64,000 nt of DNA from Dendrobates tinctorius (Eukaryota). Location: contig NW_027361825.1 of the NCBI RefSeq assembly GCF_039654945.1, forward strand, positions 23,808,001 to 23,872,000, given 5' to 3'. This document shows, piece by piece, positions 1 through 12,000 of this stretch. The stretch's first letter is position 1. Every line of letters begins with the position of its first letter. The translations under genes and the position numbers were made by a program. The notes beneath the pieces were generated by a model. That model was not told where the DNA came from and did not search any database. It saw nothing but the letters and a program-made list of their open reading frames with translations.

Positions 1-2450
1 TGTCCAGCGAGTGGAATCTCATGGGCAATCCGCAACAACTCAGTTCTGAACTGATAGGGGACGACCAGCTGTCTTTCCCTCAACCACTCCTTTTTAGGAT
101 CTCCGGGTACTGTCTCCCGGTACAACCTTCCTCGTTCCCAGAACACCCTCTCCTTATCAGACTTGGAGGTGGGCGTCTCGGCGAGACCTCTCAATTTCTC
201 CAGGCTGGCATCTGAGTGCAGAGCAGCCTGGAACTCCATGCTGGAGGCTGCCAGAAGTGACGTCAGGGTACCTCCTTTACGGGGACCCTCTGGAAACGGC
301 TCTGGGTTCACCTCTGGTTCAGTCTCTCCTGTAGCAGCAGAGGGTCCAGAAGACAGTGCGTTACCTGCGATCTGGGCACTCTGACTGCGTGTGACAGCTG
401 CTATGTATGCTGTCTCCCTGGGGATTTCTACAGACCCACCAGCCGGTGCTGCCCTGGGCTCTCCCTCCCCATCCACCCCCAACACTTTAGGAGCAGTGCT
501 ACTTATGGGCCAGTTACCTTCCTCGGTGGCACTGGTCAGCTGCATGGCATTACCTTCCTCATGGTCCCCATGCACCTCCCCATTCTCTTGAGCACCGTTG
601 CTTGCTCCTGCCAGGGGTTCCTCAGCCGTCTCACTCCGCAGAGTGACGGGGCTGAGCACCTCGGTACCTGTGGACACATCTACCGTTTCAAAGAAAGGGT
701 TAACGTGTTCAGTCGGCACAGATACATCAACATCATCATTCCTAGGAAAAGAATGGTTATCAGTTTGCTTTGGTACATTCACATCAGCATCAGCATCATA
801 CCTTGGGAAAGAATGGTTGTTAGTTGCATCATTACTCATCAAGGTATTAGCAGGTAACACATTCAGTTTCCCATCATCAACATCATCAGGGTTAACGTTA
901 CCCTCATTATCAGTTTGGGGAAGGGTGTCAGGGACATAGTATGCAACCATCCTCCCCAAGTCAGTCCCCAATAAAACATCAGTGGGCAAATTTTCAGACA
1001 CTCCCACCTCCCTCAACCCGCTCCCGGCACCCCAATCAAGAAAAACTCGTGCCACTGGCAAGGGACAACGGGTGCCTCCAATCCCGGTGACAGTCAGGGT
1101 TTTCCCCTCAACAAACTCTTCAGGGGCCGCCAGTCCAGGACGGATGAGGGTTCGTTCAGCCCCGGTGTCCTTGAGGCCTGTAGCAAGACGGGCCCCCACC
1201 TGAACAGGTTGAACGTTGTCGTCAGCCCTCCCAACCACACCTCCCACCAAAAGAACAGAGGCGTTGGGCCCGGGGGCCTTGGCTGGGGGGTTCTTCGGCC
1301 TATTCGGACAGGTGTAAAAGAAGTGACCAGGCCGCTGGCAGTGGTGACACAGGCGACTGTCAGTAGCCGGCCTGCTGTTGGCAACAGGGACAGGGCCTCC
1401 GGAGGGACGGCTAGCTGGGGCATTGGGGTTGGTTGCTGGCTTACCCCCTTTCCAGCTGGTGGCGACTGGCCTCCGCGCCTCGGGCTTCCGGTTGGCCTCG
1501 TGGTTGTCGGCGATCTGCGCCGCTTTGTCCGCGTTCGTTGGTTCGCGGTCCAGGATGAACTGTCGGACCTCAGCTGGGCAGAGATGCAGGAACTGGTCTT
1601 TGATCATCAGGTCCCGTAGCTGCTCAAAGGTTTCAACGGACAGTCCATGGATCCACTGGTCAAAGTGGGTCCTGAGTCCTTGCACCACATCACTGTAGCT
1701 ATCATGTGGGCCACGTTGGAGGTGCCGGAACTTCTTTCGGTATACCTCAGGTGTCAGCCGGTATTTGGCGATCAGCGCCTGCTTTATGGCGTCATAGTCG
1801 TCATCGGCTTCTGGCGGAAGAGAAGCAAATGCCTCCAGGGCTTTGCCTTTTAGCCCTGGGGTCAAGTACCTTGCCCATTGGTCTCTAGGCAGCTGGTACT
1901 GTCTGCAGGCTTTCTCAAAGGCTCGCAGAAATGTGTCCAAGTCCCCATCCTTTTCCATCACGGGAAAATGCTCTGGCCGGGGTTTAGGAGTCTGGACGCT
2001 GCTGGGCTCACTGCTTCGGGCTGTGGGGGCATTCCCACCCCGCTGGAGTACCTCCAGTTCATGGGCCCTCTGCGCCTGGCGCTCGGCTCTCTCAGCCTCA
2101 GCTTGGCGCTCACGTTCGGCTTGGGCCTCCTGCCGATATTGCTGGATCAGCCTCACCCGCCCATCCCTGTCTTCGGCGGGGAGTTCGTCCAAGGCCATTT
2201 GCAGATAGGGGTCCACCCCGTTCTGGTTGAATGTGGGGCCAGCGCTCAGGAGTGGAGCCTCTGCTGCAGCCCCATGGCAACTTGGGCCAACTTCTGCGCT
2301 CGCTGGATTCTGGTCGTTGTCCAGCTGCACTAGAGCCGCGATCATTTGATCTTTGGTTCCGCCTGCGGCGTCTATGCCTCGGTACGTGCATAACCCAGCA
2401 AGGGTGTCCTTTTTCTGCTTCTGATACCACTCCACTGTCATCGCCGCCAT
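1..2450 (-). CDS. Gag-Pol polyprotein of a Gmr1-like Ty3/Gypsy LTR retrotransposon (runs off the window start)
   Basis: Manual minus-strand translation from ATG 2450 (GCAACCATGG) stays open to position 3. It reads: SAP-like N-terminus, capsid/SCAN-like region (DLDTFLRAFEKACRQYQLPRDQW...LMIKDQFL), CCHC knuckle CHHCQRPGHFFYTC, protease LKDTGA, then the integrase N-terminal zinc-binding start (LVVPYQFRTELLRIAHEIPLAG, with the last His codon cut by the window edge). Probably absent from the ORF track because it has no stop in the window. Confidence 0.9.
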   Translation of the reverse strand, partial: MAAMTVEWYQKQKKDTLAGLCTYRGIDAAGGTKDQMIAALVQLDNDQNPASAEVGPSCHGAAAEAPLLSAGPTFNQNGVDPYLQMALDELPAEDRDGRVRLIQQYRQEAQAERERQAEAERAERQAQRAHELEVLQRGGNAPTARSSEPSSVQTPKPRPEHFPVMEKDGDLDTFLRAFEKACRQYQLPRDQWARYLTPGLKGKALEAFASLPPEADDDYDAIKQALIAKYRLTPEVYRKKFRHLQRGPHDSYSDVVQGLRTHFDQWIHGLSVETFEQLRDLMIKDQFLHLCPAEVRQFILDREPTNADKAAQIADNHEANRKPEARRPVATSWKGGKPATNPNAPASRPSGGPVPVANSRPATDSRLCHHCQRPGHFFYTCPNRPKNPPAKAPGPNASVLLVGGVVGRADDNVQPVQVGARLATGLKDTGAERTLIRPGLAAPEEFVEGKTLTVTGIGGTRCPLPVARVFLDWGAGSGLREVGVSENLPTDVLLGTDLGRMVAYYVPDTLPQTDNEGNVNPDDVDDGKLNVLPANTLMSNDATNNHSFPRYDADADVNVPKQTDNHSFPRNDDVDVSVPTEHVNPFFETVDVSTGTEVLSPVTLRSETAEEPLAGASNGAQENGEVHGDHEEGNAMQLTSATEEGNWPISSTAPKVLGVDGEGEPRAAPAGGSVEIPRETAYIAAVTRSQSAQIAGNALSSGPSAATGETEPEVNPEPFPEGPRKGGTLTSLLAASSMEFQAALHSDASLEKLRGLAETPTSKSDKERVFWERGRLYRETVPGDPKKEWLRERQLVVPYQFRTELLRIAHEIPLAG

Positions 2451-2873
2451 GGTTGCCAAATAAAAGATAGAAAAAGAAAAACGAAGAAACGGGAGGGGGA
2501 TACTTGCAAGTACACACTAATGTCTCAGGACTAGTAACCACTGAGTCTGTTCTCCAAAACCTATGATGCAGGATTCCCGCAGGAACCGTGCAGGTCTTTA
2601 GTGAGAGGAATGATTGCTCAAACCAAATCACTAATGCTCTAGGATTATCCCACCGCTCTGCCACCAATATGTGACGAACAGCCCACCGCCGTTCGTCCAC
2701 TTACGGGCGACGACTAACGGGGGTCCCGCTGCCACCAAAACGCGACGGACAGCGGACCCTGTGTCACCACTCTGTCACAATCCCACCACTGACACCGGTG
2801 TATCAGCGGACGGAGGGACCTGACACAATGCCGGCACACGGCTATCACAGGCGCAGTGGGGCTTATCTTAGTT

Positions 2874-2891
2874 ATCCCACCACTGGCACCA
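2874..2891 (-). other. Primer binding site, tRNA-Leu type
   Basis: Minus strand TGGTGCCAGTGGTGGGAT directly after ...TGTCACA; near-complement of the tRNA-Leu 3' end (ATCCCACCACTGCCACCA). Confidence 0.75.
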
Positions 2892-4666
2892 TGTGACAAA
2901 AATATCCAGCAAGCTAATCTCGCTCTACAATTTGCCGCAGGGGGAGTTTAATTTGGATGCCCCACCCTGCTATCAATCTTCCAAGTACTGCGGGGATTTG
3001 TGTATATCCCACTTTCTCAGTTCCACTTTGGAACTCACAGCTCTCCGGCGCCCCCCTTACCCTCAGGTCAGTCAGGGAACTGCACCTAGGATAATTGGTC
3101 GCCGGACGGGCTGCCTGTTGTGAACCGGCAATTAGGCTTCTGCAGTAAGGGAATTATCAATGCTGTGGCCGCAGACCCCTATTCAGCAATATAAGACCCT
3201 TCTGTACTGCCAGCAAGCCGTAATAGCCGTACACAACGCGCTGCCACCAGTCACGGTTACTTAATTCACAGTGTTAAATTAAGAGGGTCCGTGGCAAACC
3301 CTTTGAATTAGTAGCGATTATCTAACAAAGGCGTATAGTTCGATTCTTAGAGCATGGAGACAGATCTAAATAATTTCATTTATTTTCCGAAAGAGGACAG
3401 TGATTACAGATAAAAGTTGCTATAAAATTGAGACATAAAATATGTACAGTACAGGTATAAAATAAAAGTGGAGAAAACAAAGAGATTGCACTCACAGTTC
3501 CATATTGTTCCTTAGGCGGACCATGCGGCTAAGGTGGGTGGAGGCGGAGCTGCACTTCTCCGCTCATCTGAGTTCTTGTCAGCACGGACTCTGCAGCTGT
3601 TCTGAGCTGGTTTGCCCAGGAAATGCCTTATAGACTTTCCTATGTGACATCACAGAGAGGTGCATTCTGGGTTGATCCCACCTCTCTTATCCAAGTTATG
3701 TTTTGGATACAAAACTTAGATTAGCTATAACTTTATGGGAGAAGCTGGTATGGACTCATCAGTGGTATCATGTTTCCCAGCGTAATGAGCCCATCAAGAA
3801 AACATCAAACATCTATGCGATATGACCGTCTATTTGGGCGCAAATCCTATCTCATGTTCTGGACAGGGTAGAACTTCGAAACATACGCGGTCTCGAAGCT
3901 GGGACCGCTCAGGTTACAAAAATATGATTTTCATATCTCTAGGGTATTTGGTTCTTATGGTATAGTCTCTCATAGTTTTATTCGTTTCAAACAAAGAAGT
4001 TTAGTTCCCGCACTTTTTCCTCTTTCAGCTGAGAGAAGCCAAATGGTGTGAGGAAGATGGTCTAGCTAATTAACATTCCTGCTCTTCCAGAGGAAGTGGC
4101 AGGGTTGGTAAAACCTGGGGGGGAAGGAATTCCTACTACTGACAGTTTACAATGTCCTAGGATGGAGGATTTGTTAGCACATTGCAACAGAAAACATATC
4201 TTGCAGATATTATACATCACAAACAGTAAAAAAATAAATAAAGTAAAGTAAAATAAAGAAACTCAACCCCAAAATTTTTATTTCTATATTTGCTGTGCAA
4301 AAAAAAAAAAAAAAAAACACAAAGCAATTTACAAAAACCTCCAAATAAGATTAAGGACGGGTTGCAGCAGGAAATATGTAACGGCTGTTTTGCACGACTT
4401 CTCAGGGAACTTTTCAGGTGTGTGGTTGAGAAATCGCTCTCCTGCTTGGAATCTGCTGTAGTTTGGAGATCACCTGGAAATTAACTCTCTTCCTATCAAA
4501 GCTCAGGTGAGTTTGCCCTTATAAATTAAGGCAAATGGAAAAGAGCACGGCTGCAGTGTAAAGCATGGGGGCAGTGTGACTCTGAGCCTCTGATGAGCCA
4601 GATAAAGGATTTCAGACAATCTCAGGATATAACTACGTGATTACACATGAAAAATGAGGAACGCAC

Positions 4667-4749
4667 CTTAATAAAAGTTATTCCCACCACCAGACCGCGC
4701 TTAGGAGGCGACTTGCTGAAGGAATCAATGGAGACAATCTCGGCATCGA
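4667..4749 (-). CDS. kptn: Kaptin (KICSTOR subunit) exon 2
   Basis: 83-bp AG/GT-bounded exon encoding (V)[27 protein letters not shown], near-identical to human KPTN; phase matches exon 1. Confidence 0.95.
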
Positions 4750-4897
4750 CTGGAAAAAAAAGGAGAAAACAACTAAAAACAAAACTTTTTCTGTACACAG
4801 CCCCAATGCATCGTTACCGGCTGTCAGGTGTTACAAAGGAATCTGATCGTGGACACGCCCCCTCCCAGGTACAATGACAAGCCACGCCCCCTCGCAC

Positions 4898-5120
4898 CTG
4901 GGATGTAGGTGAACTGCAGCTCCCGGGCCCCGGCGCGGACCTTGTCCCGCAGCTCCTGGTACTTGAAACTGGTGACTTTACCCTTCAAGGTGGCGGCCAG
5001 CAGTTCGTGTCCGCCGCCTCCTCCCGCACACGGCAGCACCGAGAGACCGTACACATTGCTCTGGGAAGGAAACCGGCTGAAAGTATCTTCTGTAAGAGGG
5101 CAGAAGCAGGCGCCGGACAT
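4898..5120 (-). CDS. kptn: Kaptin (KICSTOR subunit) exon 1
   Basis: [26 protein letters not shown]...[11 protein letters not shown]...ELQFTYIP matches the human KPTN N-terminus; phase-1 donor GTGCGA at 4897. Confidence 0.95.
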
Positions 5121-5230: not shown

Positions 5231-5544
5231 TGCTTTGGGCAGTGTAAGGAGTAAAAACCTCTGTAGTCAGGGAGGGTGGTGATTATTTGGGGGCAAAGGT
5301 ACTAAAATATCCCACCTCCATGACCATTATGCATTTTAGCATTAATTGCACTTGAGACCTGTACCTCACCTTTGTGGGAGCTCAAGTTATAATGTACTAT
5401 GCAGAGACTCAAACTCTTGCTGAAAGGTGGCCTATCCCTGCTTACAGAGTACCTCATATAACACCCATGTTTGACCCTTTGGGGCCTGACCCCCGGGACA
5501 CGCACTGATTACAGCAGGAGGGGTTTGCAGGATAGATGTAGCAG

Positions 5545-6520
5545 AGCTATGTGTGTACGGAGCGGAGCCGCGTGTGTACGAGGTGTACGGAGCGGAGCCG
5601 CGTGTGTACGGAGCAGAGCCGTGTGTGTACGAGGTCACATAGCGGAGATGTGAACGGGGTGTACGGAACGAAGCAGCATGTGTACGAGGTGTACATAGCG
5701 GAGATGTGTACGGAGCGGAGCCGCGTGTGTACGAGGTGTACGGAGCGGAGCCGTGTGTGTACGAGGTGTACATAGCGGAGATGTGAACGGGGTGTACGGA
5801 GCGAAGCCGCGTGTGTACGAGGTGTACGGAGAGGAGCCGCGTGTGTATGAGGTGTACATAGTGAAGATGTGTACGGGGTGTACGGAGCGGAGCCGCGTGT
5901 GTACGAGGTGTACATAGTGAAGATGTGTACGGGGTGTACGGAGAGGAGCCGCGTGTGTATGAGGTGTACATAGTGAAGATGTGTACGGAGAGGAGCCGTG
6001 TGTGTACAAGGTGTACATAGTGAAGATGTGTACGGAGCAGAGCCGTGTGTGTACGAGGTGTACATAGCGGAGATGTGAACGGGGTGTACGGAGCGGAGCC
6101 GCATGTGTACGAGGTGTACGGAGAGGAGCCGTGTGTGTATGAGGTGTACGGAGCGGAGCCGCGTGTGTACGAGGTGTTCGGAGAGGAGCCGCGTGTGTAC
6201 GAGGTGTACATAGTGAAGATGTGTACGGGGTGTACGGAGCGGAGCCGCGTGTGTACGAGGTGTACGGAGCGGAGCCGCGTGTGTACGAGGTGTACGGAGC
6301 AGAGCCGTGTGTGTACGAGGTGTACATAGCGGAGATGTGAACGGGGTGTACGGAGCGGAGCCGCATGTGTACGAGGTGTACAGAGAGGAGCCGCGTGTGT
6401 ATGAGGTGTTCGGAACGGAGCCGCGTGTGTATGAGGTGTTCGGAACGGAGCCGCGTGTGTATGAGGTGTTCGGAACGGAGCCGCGTGTACGAGGGATGAG
6501 CAGAGCCAAGTGTGTACGAA
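5545..6520. repeat. Minisatellite with ~30-bp unit (GTGTACGGAGCGGAGCCGCGTGTGTACGAG) and variant units
   Basis: Directly visible tandem units, interspersed with GTGTACATAGCGGAGATGTGAACGGG-type variants. Confidence 0.95.
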
Positions 6521-6837
6521 GCATGCAAAGCGGGCTTTTCCCACAGACACAGGAGTACACGGCAGAGTCCCGAGGAGCATTTTAAAACTCGCACATGACG
6601 TTCCACCTGAAGTGATGTGCTGGAAGCTGACCGGAAATGAGATAATTTCATGAGGAGATTGTGACTGAACTAGGAATGCTTCAGATCCATCACCATGTCC
6701 TCCGACAGCGCAGACAGCAGGATCGCCTTGGAATCGGGGATGCCGGCCATGTGAGTGGATCATGATATGTCCTGCATCGGGAGGCTCAGTTGGTCACTAC
6801 AATGGGAGCCGGGCTGCTATAGTATCTTTATAGAATA

Positions 6838-9920: not shown

Positions 9921-12000
9921 TGTGAAGGGTTAATACTAAAATCAGCTGAAGTTTCGTTTTATCCATTCTCTGAAGATTTCGTTTCTTTGTTTTTGTTGAT
10001 GTAAGATAAATTTTGTAATTAGGTAAAAGTTCAAACTGTCATGAAACCAGACTGTTCCCATCAGGTACAAGATAAGGGAGGCGGGGGTGTAAAACTCTGA
10101 AGAATGTGCCATTATACTACTTTCTATTTGGATACGGACATATATGTAGTTTCCGGTTTTCTTGCAATATTATTGGCTTACAAAGTGAAATGATTTTATT
10201 GGTAGTTGAGAACCTTGCATAATTAAGCAAAATATTATAAAAGAAGTGACTAAAATAAAGGGGCTTAGTGATCTGTCTCGATCCTCCCATACAGAGACCC
10301 CCCATCTCGGTGTGGTCATTTGAGTTGCTAGCAACACTGGAATAATTTGGACATCACTGGCTCAACCGTGAAGGGTTAATTTAGCCCTCCCTATATAGCT
10401 ACCCCGACAGTGGTGCCCAACGTGGGGCCCCCGAATAGGGACGCCTCTGCCCCCGGAGGACAACAAGACAAAGGAACCTCGGAGCGGACACAGGTGCTGG
10501 AAAATTGGGACTGATCACCCCCCACGACAACCACGGTAAGTTGGCAGTTATACTGTTCAGACTGACCGTTGGTGTGGTTTTCCTGTGCTTGTTGCTGCAA
10601 AGAGGATCTGAGGTTCATGGGTGGAATCATATAGAGGTGTAGTCCCGTTGGGGGCCCAGTGCTCGAACCGTACCTCATAAGGTACGGACACCCCGGATTG
10701 ACCAGTGATTGTGGCTCTCTTTATAGTCAAAATACCCTGAAATTCCCGATCATTATTAGTATTGGGCGTGGTGATGTGATCGAAGATGGGTAGAATACGT
10801 AACTCAGGTATATATAGATAGATATATATAACCAGAGGTGTCCGGAGGGATAGTCTGAGACACCCTCCTCCTTTCACTGAGTACCGCGAATTTTGGGCAA
10901 TCCCAGAGGGGGATTATTGACCTGGTGGAACAGAGACTGAAATGGCCGCCAGAACTGTGCACAATTTAAGTCAGGATGTTTGGCTCTAATGGAGAGAATT
11001 ATGTTTCTGTGGAAGAAAAAGAAAAGTTTGGAATTGTGTGAAGGATCAGATACTGTTAGTCTTATGATTCAAAGACGAGGAAAGAAATTTATCAGGAATG
11101 CAGGAAAAATATTTTCGATTCTGGGATTTCCTAAGGGCGGGAGGTTGCAGCCTACGCTATGGGATGAAGGAGTTAAAAAGAATAAAGGAAGGTTGACTGA
11201 TGATGGATTACTTGAAGGCGCTGAGGAATTCCGTGGCTTGGCACATGAATTGTATAATGAAGGTTATGTGGACATTGAACTGCAAGTGAATTCTGATTGT
11301 TTCTGTTACTGCTATGTTGAAGAAGGAAAATTGTCTATTATTATGGCAAAGACGGGATGTATTGTGGTTCAAGAAAGTGACTGTGGTGTGAGAAAGTGAT
11401 TGATTAAAGAAGGAACAGAGATTAATGAGACAATGTGTCAGGCAGTTGAATAGTTAAAAGTGATGATTTGAAAGAAGAGGTCTCCCTGCTAGATGACAAT
11501 TGTACAAGGAGACCGAGAGTCGCAGCCCCCACCTCTGCTGACGGCACCTATTATCATCCGCTGCCAGCCTTAGTCCCCGTTATTGCTAGTGGTTGAGTAT
11601 CCACCCCTCCCATTTACCAGCTCCAGAGGAAAAAAAAAAAGTTTTCAGAAGACTTTAACCCGCTCTGTTCAGCAGAGAGAGAGAAAAAAAAAAGAGCAAA
11701 CAGCAGCCTCTAGCCCCCACCGCAGCTGCGAGCATACAGTGTGCCCTTCAGCCCACACAGCAAACTCTCACCCCCCCTCAGACTTCAGCTACTGGGAATC
11801 TTTCTCCCCAGCCCCTCCCTGCCAATTTTCGTCTGCAATGCACTGTGCTCGATTTGGACACTTTCAGAGAGATTGTCATTCCCCTGCTATTTTAATCGGA
11901 GTAGATGGTAGACCCAATTAATATACTTTTATAAACCCCATAAAACCCTTCCCCGAGGTTACTATTCAGTTTGTAATCGCTCCCACATGTCCTGTAAATT
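9921..12000 (+). mobile_element. Endogenous retrovirus remnant: 5' LTR, tRNA-Lys PBS, decayed gag
   Basis: LTR 9921-10409 (TG...CA, TATA ~10235, AATAAA ~10254). PBS TGGTGCCCAACGTGGGGC at 10411-10428 (17/18 to tRNA-Lys CTT complement). Donor-like GGTAAG ~10535. ORF 10980-11399 possibly matrix-like; frameshifted CCHC knuckle (CNA/CARFGHFQRDC) ~11833-11876. The 3' boundary is approximate. Confidence 0.75.

Follow-up and report, generated by a model that had tools for sequence, protein, structure and literature searches.

Probable fossil LTR-end and tRNA-Leu primer-site junctions in U5 of a Gmr1-like retrotransposon of Dendrobates tinctorius

Gmr1-like and Gmr30-like Ty3/Gypsy elements of vertebrates possess a SCAN capsid, a CCHC zinc knuckle and a protease followed by an integrase, an arrangement shared by the element described here; the frog relatives of this element also share their TG...CA LTR ends and 5-bp target duplications. 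In 2004, Voronin and Pathak reportedly obtained initiation at either site of retroviral vectors carrying two primer-binding sites. In such vectors, as in the history that we propose below, the position of tRNA priming sets the U5 boundary, and downstream priming makes the upstream site part of the LTR. Another point of comparison is the primer activation signal (PAS) of HIV-1, which lies near the primer site and pairs with the tRNA-Lys3 T-arm. This signal is located in U5 (PMC5542766) and resembles one of the frog motifs in being a short, conserved, tRNA-complementary U5 motif upstream of the primer site. Targeting of primer sites by 3′ tRNA fragments (PMC12853362) provides a further parallel, as the 18-base primer site discussed here is the exact complement of a known tRNA-Leu-AAG 3′ fragment. 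Literature listings give this 18-mer as human tRF-Leu-AAG, i.e., the CCA-bearing 3′ end of tRNA-Leu-AAG, and conservation of vertebrate tRNAs makes it presumable that the frog tRNA-Leu 3′ end is the same. Our literature searches turned up no account of natural LTR elements with several primer sites or fossil junctions, nor of natural elements in which U5 holds a second acceptor-end motif.

The window analyzed here is a 64-kb stretch of Dendrobates tinctorius contig NW_027361825.1, which contains part of a minus-strand LTR retrotransposon with its gag ATG at position 2450. From this ATG to the window start the reading frame is uninterrupted for 816 codons (translation). A Pfam search of this frame found SCAN, together with a weak RVP match under Pfam's cut-off, and a CCHC zinc knuckle was read from the translation of gag. 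An integrase-like region begins after the protease and before the window edge, which precedes any reverse transcriptase. The nearest gag proteins come from dendrobatid frogs (65–77% identity). In relatives the domain order is gag-PR-IN-RT-RNase H (SCAN, Integrase_H2C2 and rve, RVT_1 and RNase H in L001 and L003); since this is the Gmr1-like order, the window element, with its SCAN-gag, protease and then integrase, is placed by domain content as a Gmr1-like Ty3/Gypsy element.

The retrotransposon shares the orientation of the kaptin gene (kptn) and sits in the intron that follows the first two kaptin exons (4668–5120, minus strand); exon 1 (~4899–5120) matches solved kaptin chains with E 9e-22. 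Farther along, at 5432–6763, a short-period repeat array is overlain by long ORFs in each of the three minus-strand frames, with shorter ORFs on the plus strand. Their translations are repetitive and of low complexity; this stretch is probably a tandem repeat rather than a gene.

An earlier note on this DNA had described five look-alikes of the tRNA-Leu 3′ end and two TGTGAC motifs, and re-reading of the sequence located every one of them at the position it had given. These motifs, together with one GTCACA, are as follows.

2647–2666, seen on the plus strand: 20-mer, tRNA-Leu 3′ end with two extra bases
2726–2737, seen on the plus strand: 12-mer tRNA-Leu look-alike
2780–2796, seen on the plus strand: 17-mer tRNA-Leu look-alike
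2874–2891, seen on the plus strand: 18-mer tRNA-Leu look-alike
3239–3249, seen on the plus strand: 11-mer tRNA-Leu look-alike
2670 and 2892, plus strand: TGTGAC
2774–2779, plus strand: GTCACA

Look-alikes were scanned for with 11-base sub-windows of the tRNA-Leu 3′ 18-mer, at least 10 of 11 bases matching. The region 2640–2900 (261 bases) contains four such sites, every one on the plus strand, while 2000 dinucleotide-preserving shuffles of the region produced a mean of 0.05 sites and none of the 2000 reached three. Measured against these shuffled controls (4 sites vs. 0.05 expected), the tRNA-Leu cluster is beyond chance. The rest of the window (outside 2647–3675) contains 13 sites, both strands summed. 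Three weak look-alikes (10/11) fall within ~200 bases at 11500–11740 on the plus strand, seemingly in another retroelement-like stretch.

Origin of the look-alikes from a tRNA gene, a pseudogene or a tRNA-derived SINE was considered and rejected. ARAGORN predicted no tRNA genes in the window and none in the loci of the five frog relatives introduced below, Rfam returned no tRNA match in the look-alike region at E up to 1, and no T-loop next to the look-alikes was apparent by eye, so that no tRNA body was recognized past the last 18 bases. The look-alikes also contain the CCA that is added post-transcriptionally, and they therefore go back to primer sites rather than to tRNA genes or SINEs.

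Five frog relatives of the element were retrieved through their gag proteins.

Pristimantis (L001): LTR pair 95% identical; target duplication unseen, the contig end cutting the 5′ LTR
Spea (L002): LTR pair 100% identical; 5-bp target duplication GTTGG
Rhinoderma (L003): LTR pair 99.7% identical; 5-bp target duplication TAGAC
Xenopus (L004): LTR pair 99.9% identical; 5-bp target duplication ACTAC
Engystomops (L005): LTR pair 99.3% identical; 5-bp target duplication CAAAT

In four of them TG...CA LTR termini are accompanied by a 5-bp target duplication; the window holds one LTR only. The LTR 3′ end has the same layout in all five (...GTGACA, a spacer of 2–3 bases and a tRNA-Leu(AAG/TAG) primer site), and the distance from the primer-site start to the gag ATG is 202–227 nt. 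No relatives turned up among viral contigs.

The window contains no second LTR copy, the 3′ LTR of this element lying to its left, and the LTR boundary was set by homology instead of by an LTR pair. Window positions 2679–2595 align with the Pristimantis junction and leader (L001 854–929; 78% identity, E 7e-11), and the site 2666–2647 starts 216 nt before the gag ATG, compared with 202–227 nt in the relatives. Because of this homology to five relatives with ends fixed by LTR pairs, four of them also by target duplications, the 5′ LTR is taken to end at 2670 and the primer site to be 2666–2647, not 2892 and 2891. The complement of the tRNA-Leu-AAG 3′ end, CCA included, thus stands three bases past the homology-set LTR end, as in a tRNA-primed LTR element. 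This LTR end places 2726–2737, 2780–2796 and 2874–2891, three motifs of the clustered four, in U5. The cluster is thus inside the LTR, as the relatives' junction aligns at 2670/2666, and not in the Gypsy leader where it had been placed; the description of its members as tRNA-Leu primer-site look-alikes, several of them with an LTR-end motif of their own, stands, but three of the clustered four do not belong to the leader. The resulting layout of the element is listed below.

1–2450, minus strand: gag (SCAN capsid, CCHC knuckle), protease and start of integrase, from translation and Pfam; cut by the window start
2451–2646, minus strand: leader, from primer site to gag ATG; aligns with the Pristimantis leader
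2647–2666, minus strand: working primer-binding site assigned by homology; 18-base complement of tRNA-Leu(AAG/TAG) with a GA bulge after base 8
2667–2669, minus strand: spacer TAT between LTR end and primer site; spacers of relatives are 2–3 bases
2670–3658, minus strand: 5′ LTR; its 3′ end is set by homology and its 5′ end lies between 3659 and ~4660
2669–2700, minus strand: predicted U5-end hairpin including the LTR terminus (fold of a 59-nt stretch, −21.4 kcal/mol)
2724–2753, minus strand: decayed junction copy; LTR-end-like stretch, TTT spacer and first 12–14 site bases; direct repeat D1, 80% identity
2761–2796, minus strand: two adjoining decayed primer-site copies; 2780–2796 with 15/17 matches, 2761–2780 with 14/20 and a 2-base bulge
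2872–2900, minus strand: decayed junction copy; GTCACA and an 18-base site copy with two mismatches, without spacer
2961–2988, minus strand: candidate older, more decayed junction copy; marginal (score 23 vs. a shuffle maximum of 22, with the frog consensus junction)
3239–3249, minus strand: conserved U5 motif, complementary to the final 11 bases of tRNA-Leu; aligns with a ten-base block of the relatives
3379–3384, minus strand: AATAAA poly(A) signal, end of R; in a block common to relatives
3627–3654, minus strand: TGATGTCACA box and TATA-like CTATAAG, LTR promoter region, from sequence; 88% over 25 bases to L001 6411–6435

The remainder of the LTR is anchored by homology blocks shared with relatives at 3485–3451, 3249–3231 and 3658–3635, and positions 3391 to 3125 are colinear with the Rhinoderma LTR. 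Terminal hairpins similar to that at the U5 end are predicted in Rhinoderma, Xenopus and Spea, with modest z-scores. An LTR start at 3654 was considered and rejected, as the Pristimantis LTR has the box 3643–3654 in its interior. About 30 nt upstream of the promoter box, 22 bases at 3666–3687 (minus strand) resemble the 3′ half of the bulged site and the leader start; with 19/22 matches and a score of 24 against a shuffle maximum of 23, this resemblance may be due to chance. Measured from the poly(A) signal block (3379–3390), U5 is ~690 nt long here vs. ~300 nt in relatives. The ancestral LTR end would lie somewhere between 3125 and 2960.

The site 2666–2647 contains two extra bases (GA) after its base 8, and comparable departures occur in relatives with near-identical LTR pairs. 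The Spea element, with LTRs 100% identical, bulges by two bases (TA) in its primer site (L002 4781–4800), at the position where the window has GA, and the Xenopus site (L004 5786–5804) has one extra base and one mismatch, with an LTR pair 99.9% identical. Within the window, the GA bulge of the working site recurs in the fossil copy 2780–2761 (14/20 matches). The near identity of the Spea and Xenopus LTR pairs argues that bulged sites are tolerated, and the copy in the window that they are inherited through at least one duplication. Bulges in such young relatives suggest that the site passes on through the RNA template and is not recopied from the tRNA.

Further traces of the junction were searched for in the rest of the LTR with a probe made of the LTR end (14 bases), spacer, primer site and leader start; in shuffles its score averaged 16.7 and peaked at 23. 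The copies recovered are listed below.

2753–2729: score 30, the best in the LTR; LTR end, spacer and first bases of the site match
2900–2872: score 27; LTR end followed directly by an 18-base site copy
2781–2765: score 19; primer-site copy with the GA bulge

For junction copies older than that at 2900 there are only marginal matches. The sites 2780–2796 and 2874–2891 are 94% alike and have one derived substitution in common, and the sites at 2761 and 2647 have the 2-base bulge in common. These likenesses indicate that the U5 copies derive from the element's own junction, 2780–2796 and 2874–2891 being paralogous decayed copies of it. The variants had previously been likened to different Leu isoacceptors, an assumption made unnecessary by the derived change that 2780–2796 and 2874–2891 share. 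No tandem array was detected at the cluster by TRF. No extra junction copies occur in the relatives examined, and the burst is therefore specific to this lineage.

Taken together, the cluster is probably a row of fossil junctions between LTR end and tRNA-Leu primer site, located in U5 of the 5′ LTR, in which only the junction at 2670/2666–2647 occupies the position seen in relatives. We infer the order and mechanism of the duplications as follows. A local duplication would have set a second junction copy a few dozen to ~100 bases downstream, from which tRNA-Leu would then have primed. Strong-stop DNA would in this case have included the old primer site and the stretch following it, and the two strand transfers would have placed both in each LTR, where the old junction copies could decay afterwards. 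Repeated rounds of this kind would have lengthened U5 stepwise, from ~300 nt to ~690 nt. Among the four mechanisms that the earlier note had offered, serial LTR-end extension fits best, but insertion of a tiny element does not, as both ends of the proposed cassette are otherwise explained.

That cassette, a "mini-LTR" of 110 bases at 2670–2779, would be an LTR-like or terminal-inverted-repeat element inserted next to the primer site, and what speaks for it is the TGTGAC ... GTCACA at its bounds. On the left, however, TGTGAC marks the actual LTR terminus common to all relatives, and on the right GTCACA lies within the mutated primer-site copy 2761–2780; a junction copy (D1) makes up the interior, no duplication flanks the stretch and no free second copy was found in the 64-kb window. 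We therefore consider such an insertion extremely improbable. A different boundary deserves more weight. Were the LTR to end at 2892, with 2874–2891 as the working site, the downstream look-alikes would become redundant or alternative sites in a long leader; there GTCACA adjoins an 18-base site with 16/18 matches (17/18 pairs with G-U), and the competing site 2647–2666 is the one with a 2-base insertion. This arrangement implies a leader of 441 nt against 202–227 nt in five relatives and lacks the spacer, which is 2–3 bases long in relatives. No U5-terminal hairpin is apparent upstream (by eye, unfolded), 2679–2595 runs colinearly with the relatives' junction and leader, and a bulged site is evidently tolerated (Spea 100%, Xenopus 99.9% LTR pairs). 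We thus regard an LTR end at 2892 as unlikely, and of the two boundaries left side by side in the earlier note, homology with five relatives favors 2670.

Selection might, alternatively, have maintained the whole cluster as sites that serve tRNA-Leu or 3′ fragments of it, in dual initiation, in tRNA packaging or as decoys that absorb inhibitory 3′ fragments. One such motif is indeed invariant across frogs, every site is in the sense able to pair with the tRNA 3′ end, and a preprint describes a mammalian gene of SCAN-gag origin whose 5′ UTR has kept two 3′-tRF target sites (PMC12853362). Selection on all copies is nevertheless hard to reconcile with their uneven decay (14/20, 15/17 and 16/18 matches, and one copy truncated at 12–14 bases), clustered copies are missing from relatives, and additional target sites should raise silencing, not lower it. 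Maintenance of the entire cluster therefore appears quite unlikely to us, and a row of decayed junctions left by a shifting primer site remains the preferred reading.

The fifth look-alike, at 3239–3249, stands apart from this row. A block of ten bases identical to the first ten primer-site bases is invariant in U5 of all five relatives, with the eleventh base present in four of the five, and is located 157–183 nt upstream of the primer site in surroundings that are barely alignable. The 11 bases of the window motif are complementary to the acceptor 3′ strand, discriminator base and CCA of tRNA-Leu; its flank is Rhinoderma-like (89% identity over 19 bases). The frogs sharing this motif split more than 200 million years ago. 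Its conservation points to an older feature under selection in all frog relatives, and because the ten bases are invariant in U5 of the five, the motif is probably functional. As a guess, it may provide a second docking site for the tRNA-Leu acceptor end. No complementary partner of the motif was found inside any element examined, and its predicted accessibility in long RNA folds was inconsistent and uninformative. We also entertain, with considerable doubt, that the motif and perhaps the younger junction copies could be working second sites for tRNA-Leu or its 3′ fragments, in which case natural two-site priming would drive LTR growth; the bulge, common to the working site, the Spea element and one fossil copy, would then be a heritable means of preserving priming at weakened pairing with inhibitory 3′ fragments.

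A scan of metagenome contigs with the junction yielded 21 loci of other tRNA-Leu LTR elements. Two of them (L013 and L019) possess tandem LTR-end copies at the junction. A non-frog family with protease followed by integrase (L014/L016) contains, 76 nt ahead of its LTR end, TGACA followed by three bases and the 11-mer of the U5 motif. The loci L013, L019 and L014/L016 are metagenome contigs (WLW..., VSKX...) from some eukaryote. The bulged junction specific to the window was not found among metagenome contigs.

The U5 motif differs from the HIV-1 PAS in that it repeats the acceptor 3′-end complement, 157–183 nt away from the primer site. Since it duplicates the acceptor-end complement, one tRNA cannot bind both sites at once. 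An HIV-1-type PAS was accordingly rejected for this motif, which matches the first 10–11 primer-site bases in sense and in sequence, and not what would be expected for the T-arm. The conserved motif would point to an undescribed step in primer-tRNA handling by Gmr1-like elements.

Compared with its Gmr1-like relatives, the window element has a U5 about twice as long and filled with what appear to be decayed primer-site junctions. Annotation tools would misplace the LTR boundary in this family if they set it at the first primer-site match. To our knowledge, changes in LTR length are poorly documented, and for a route through downstream primer sites, engineered two-site vectors are the only other known case. 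In nature, a row of fossil junctions would directly record one such route, namely a primer site moving downstream. The two-site vectors are engineered constructs, whereas the traces in the window would be natural, serial and fossilized.
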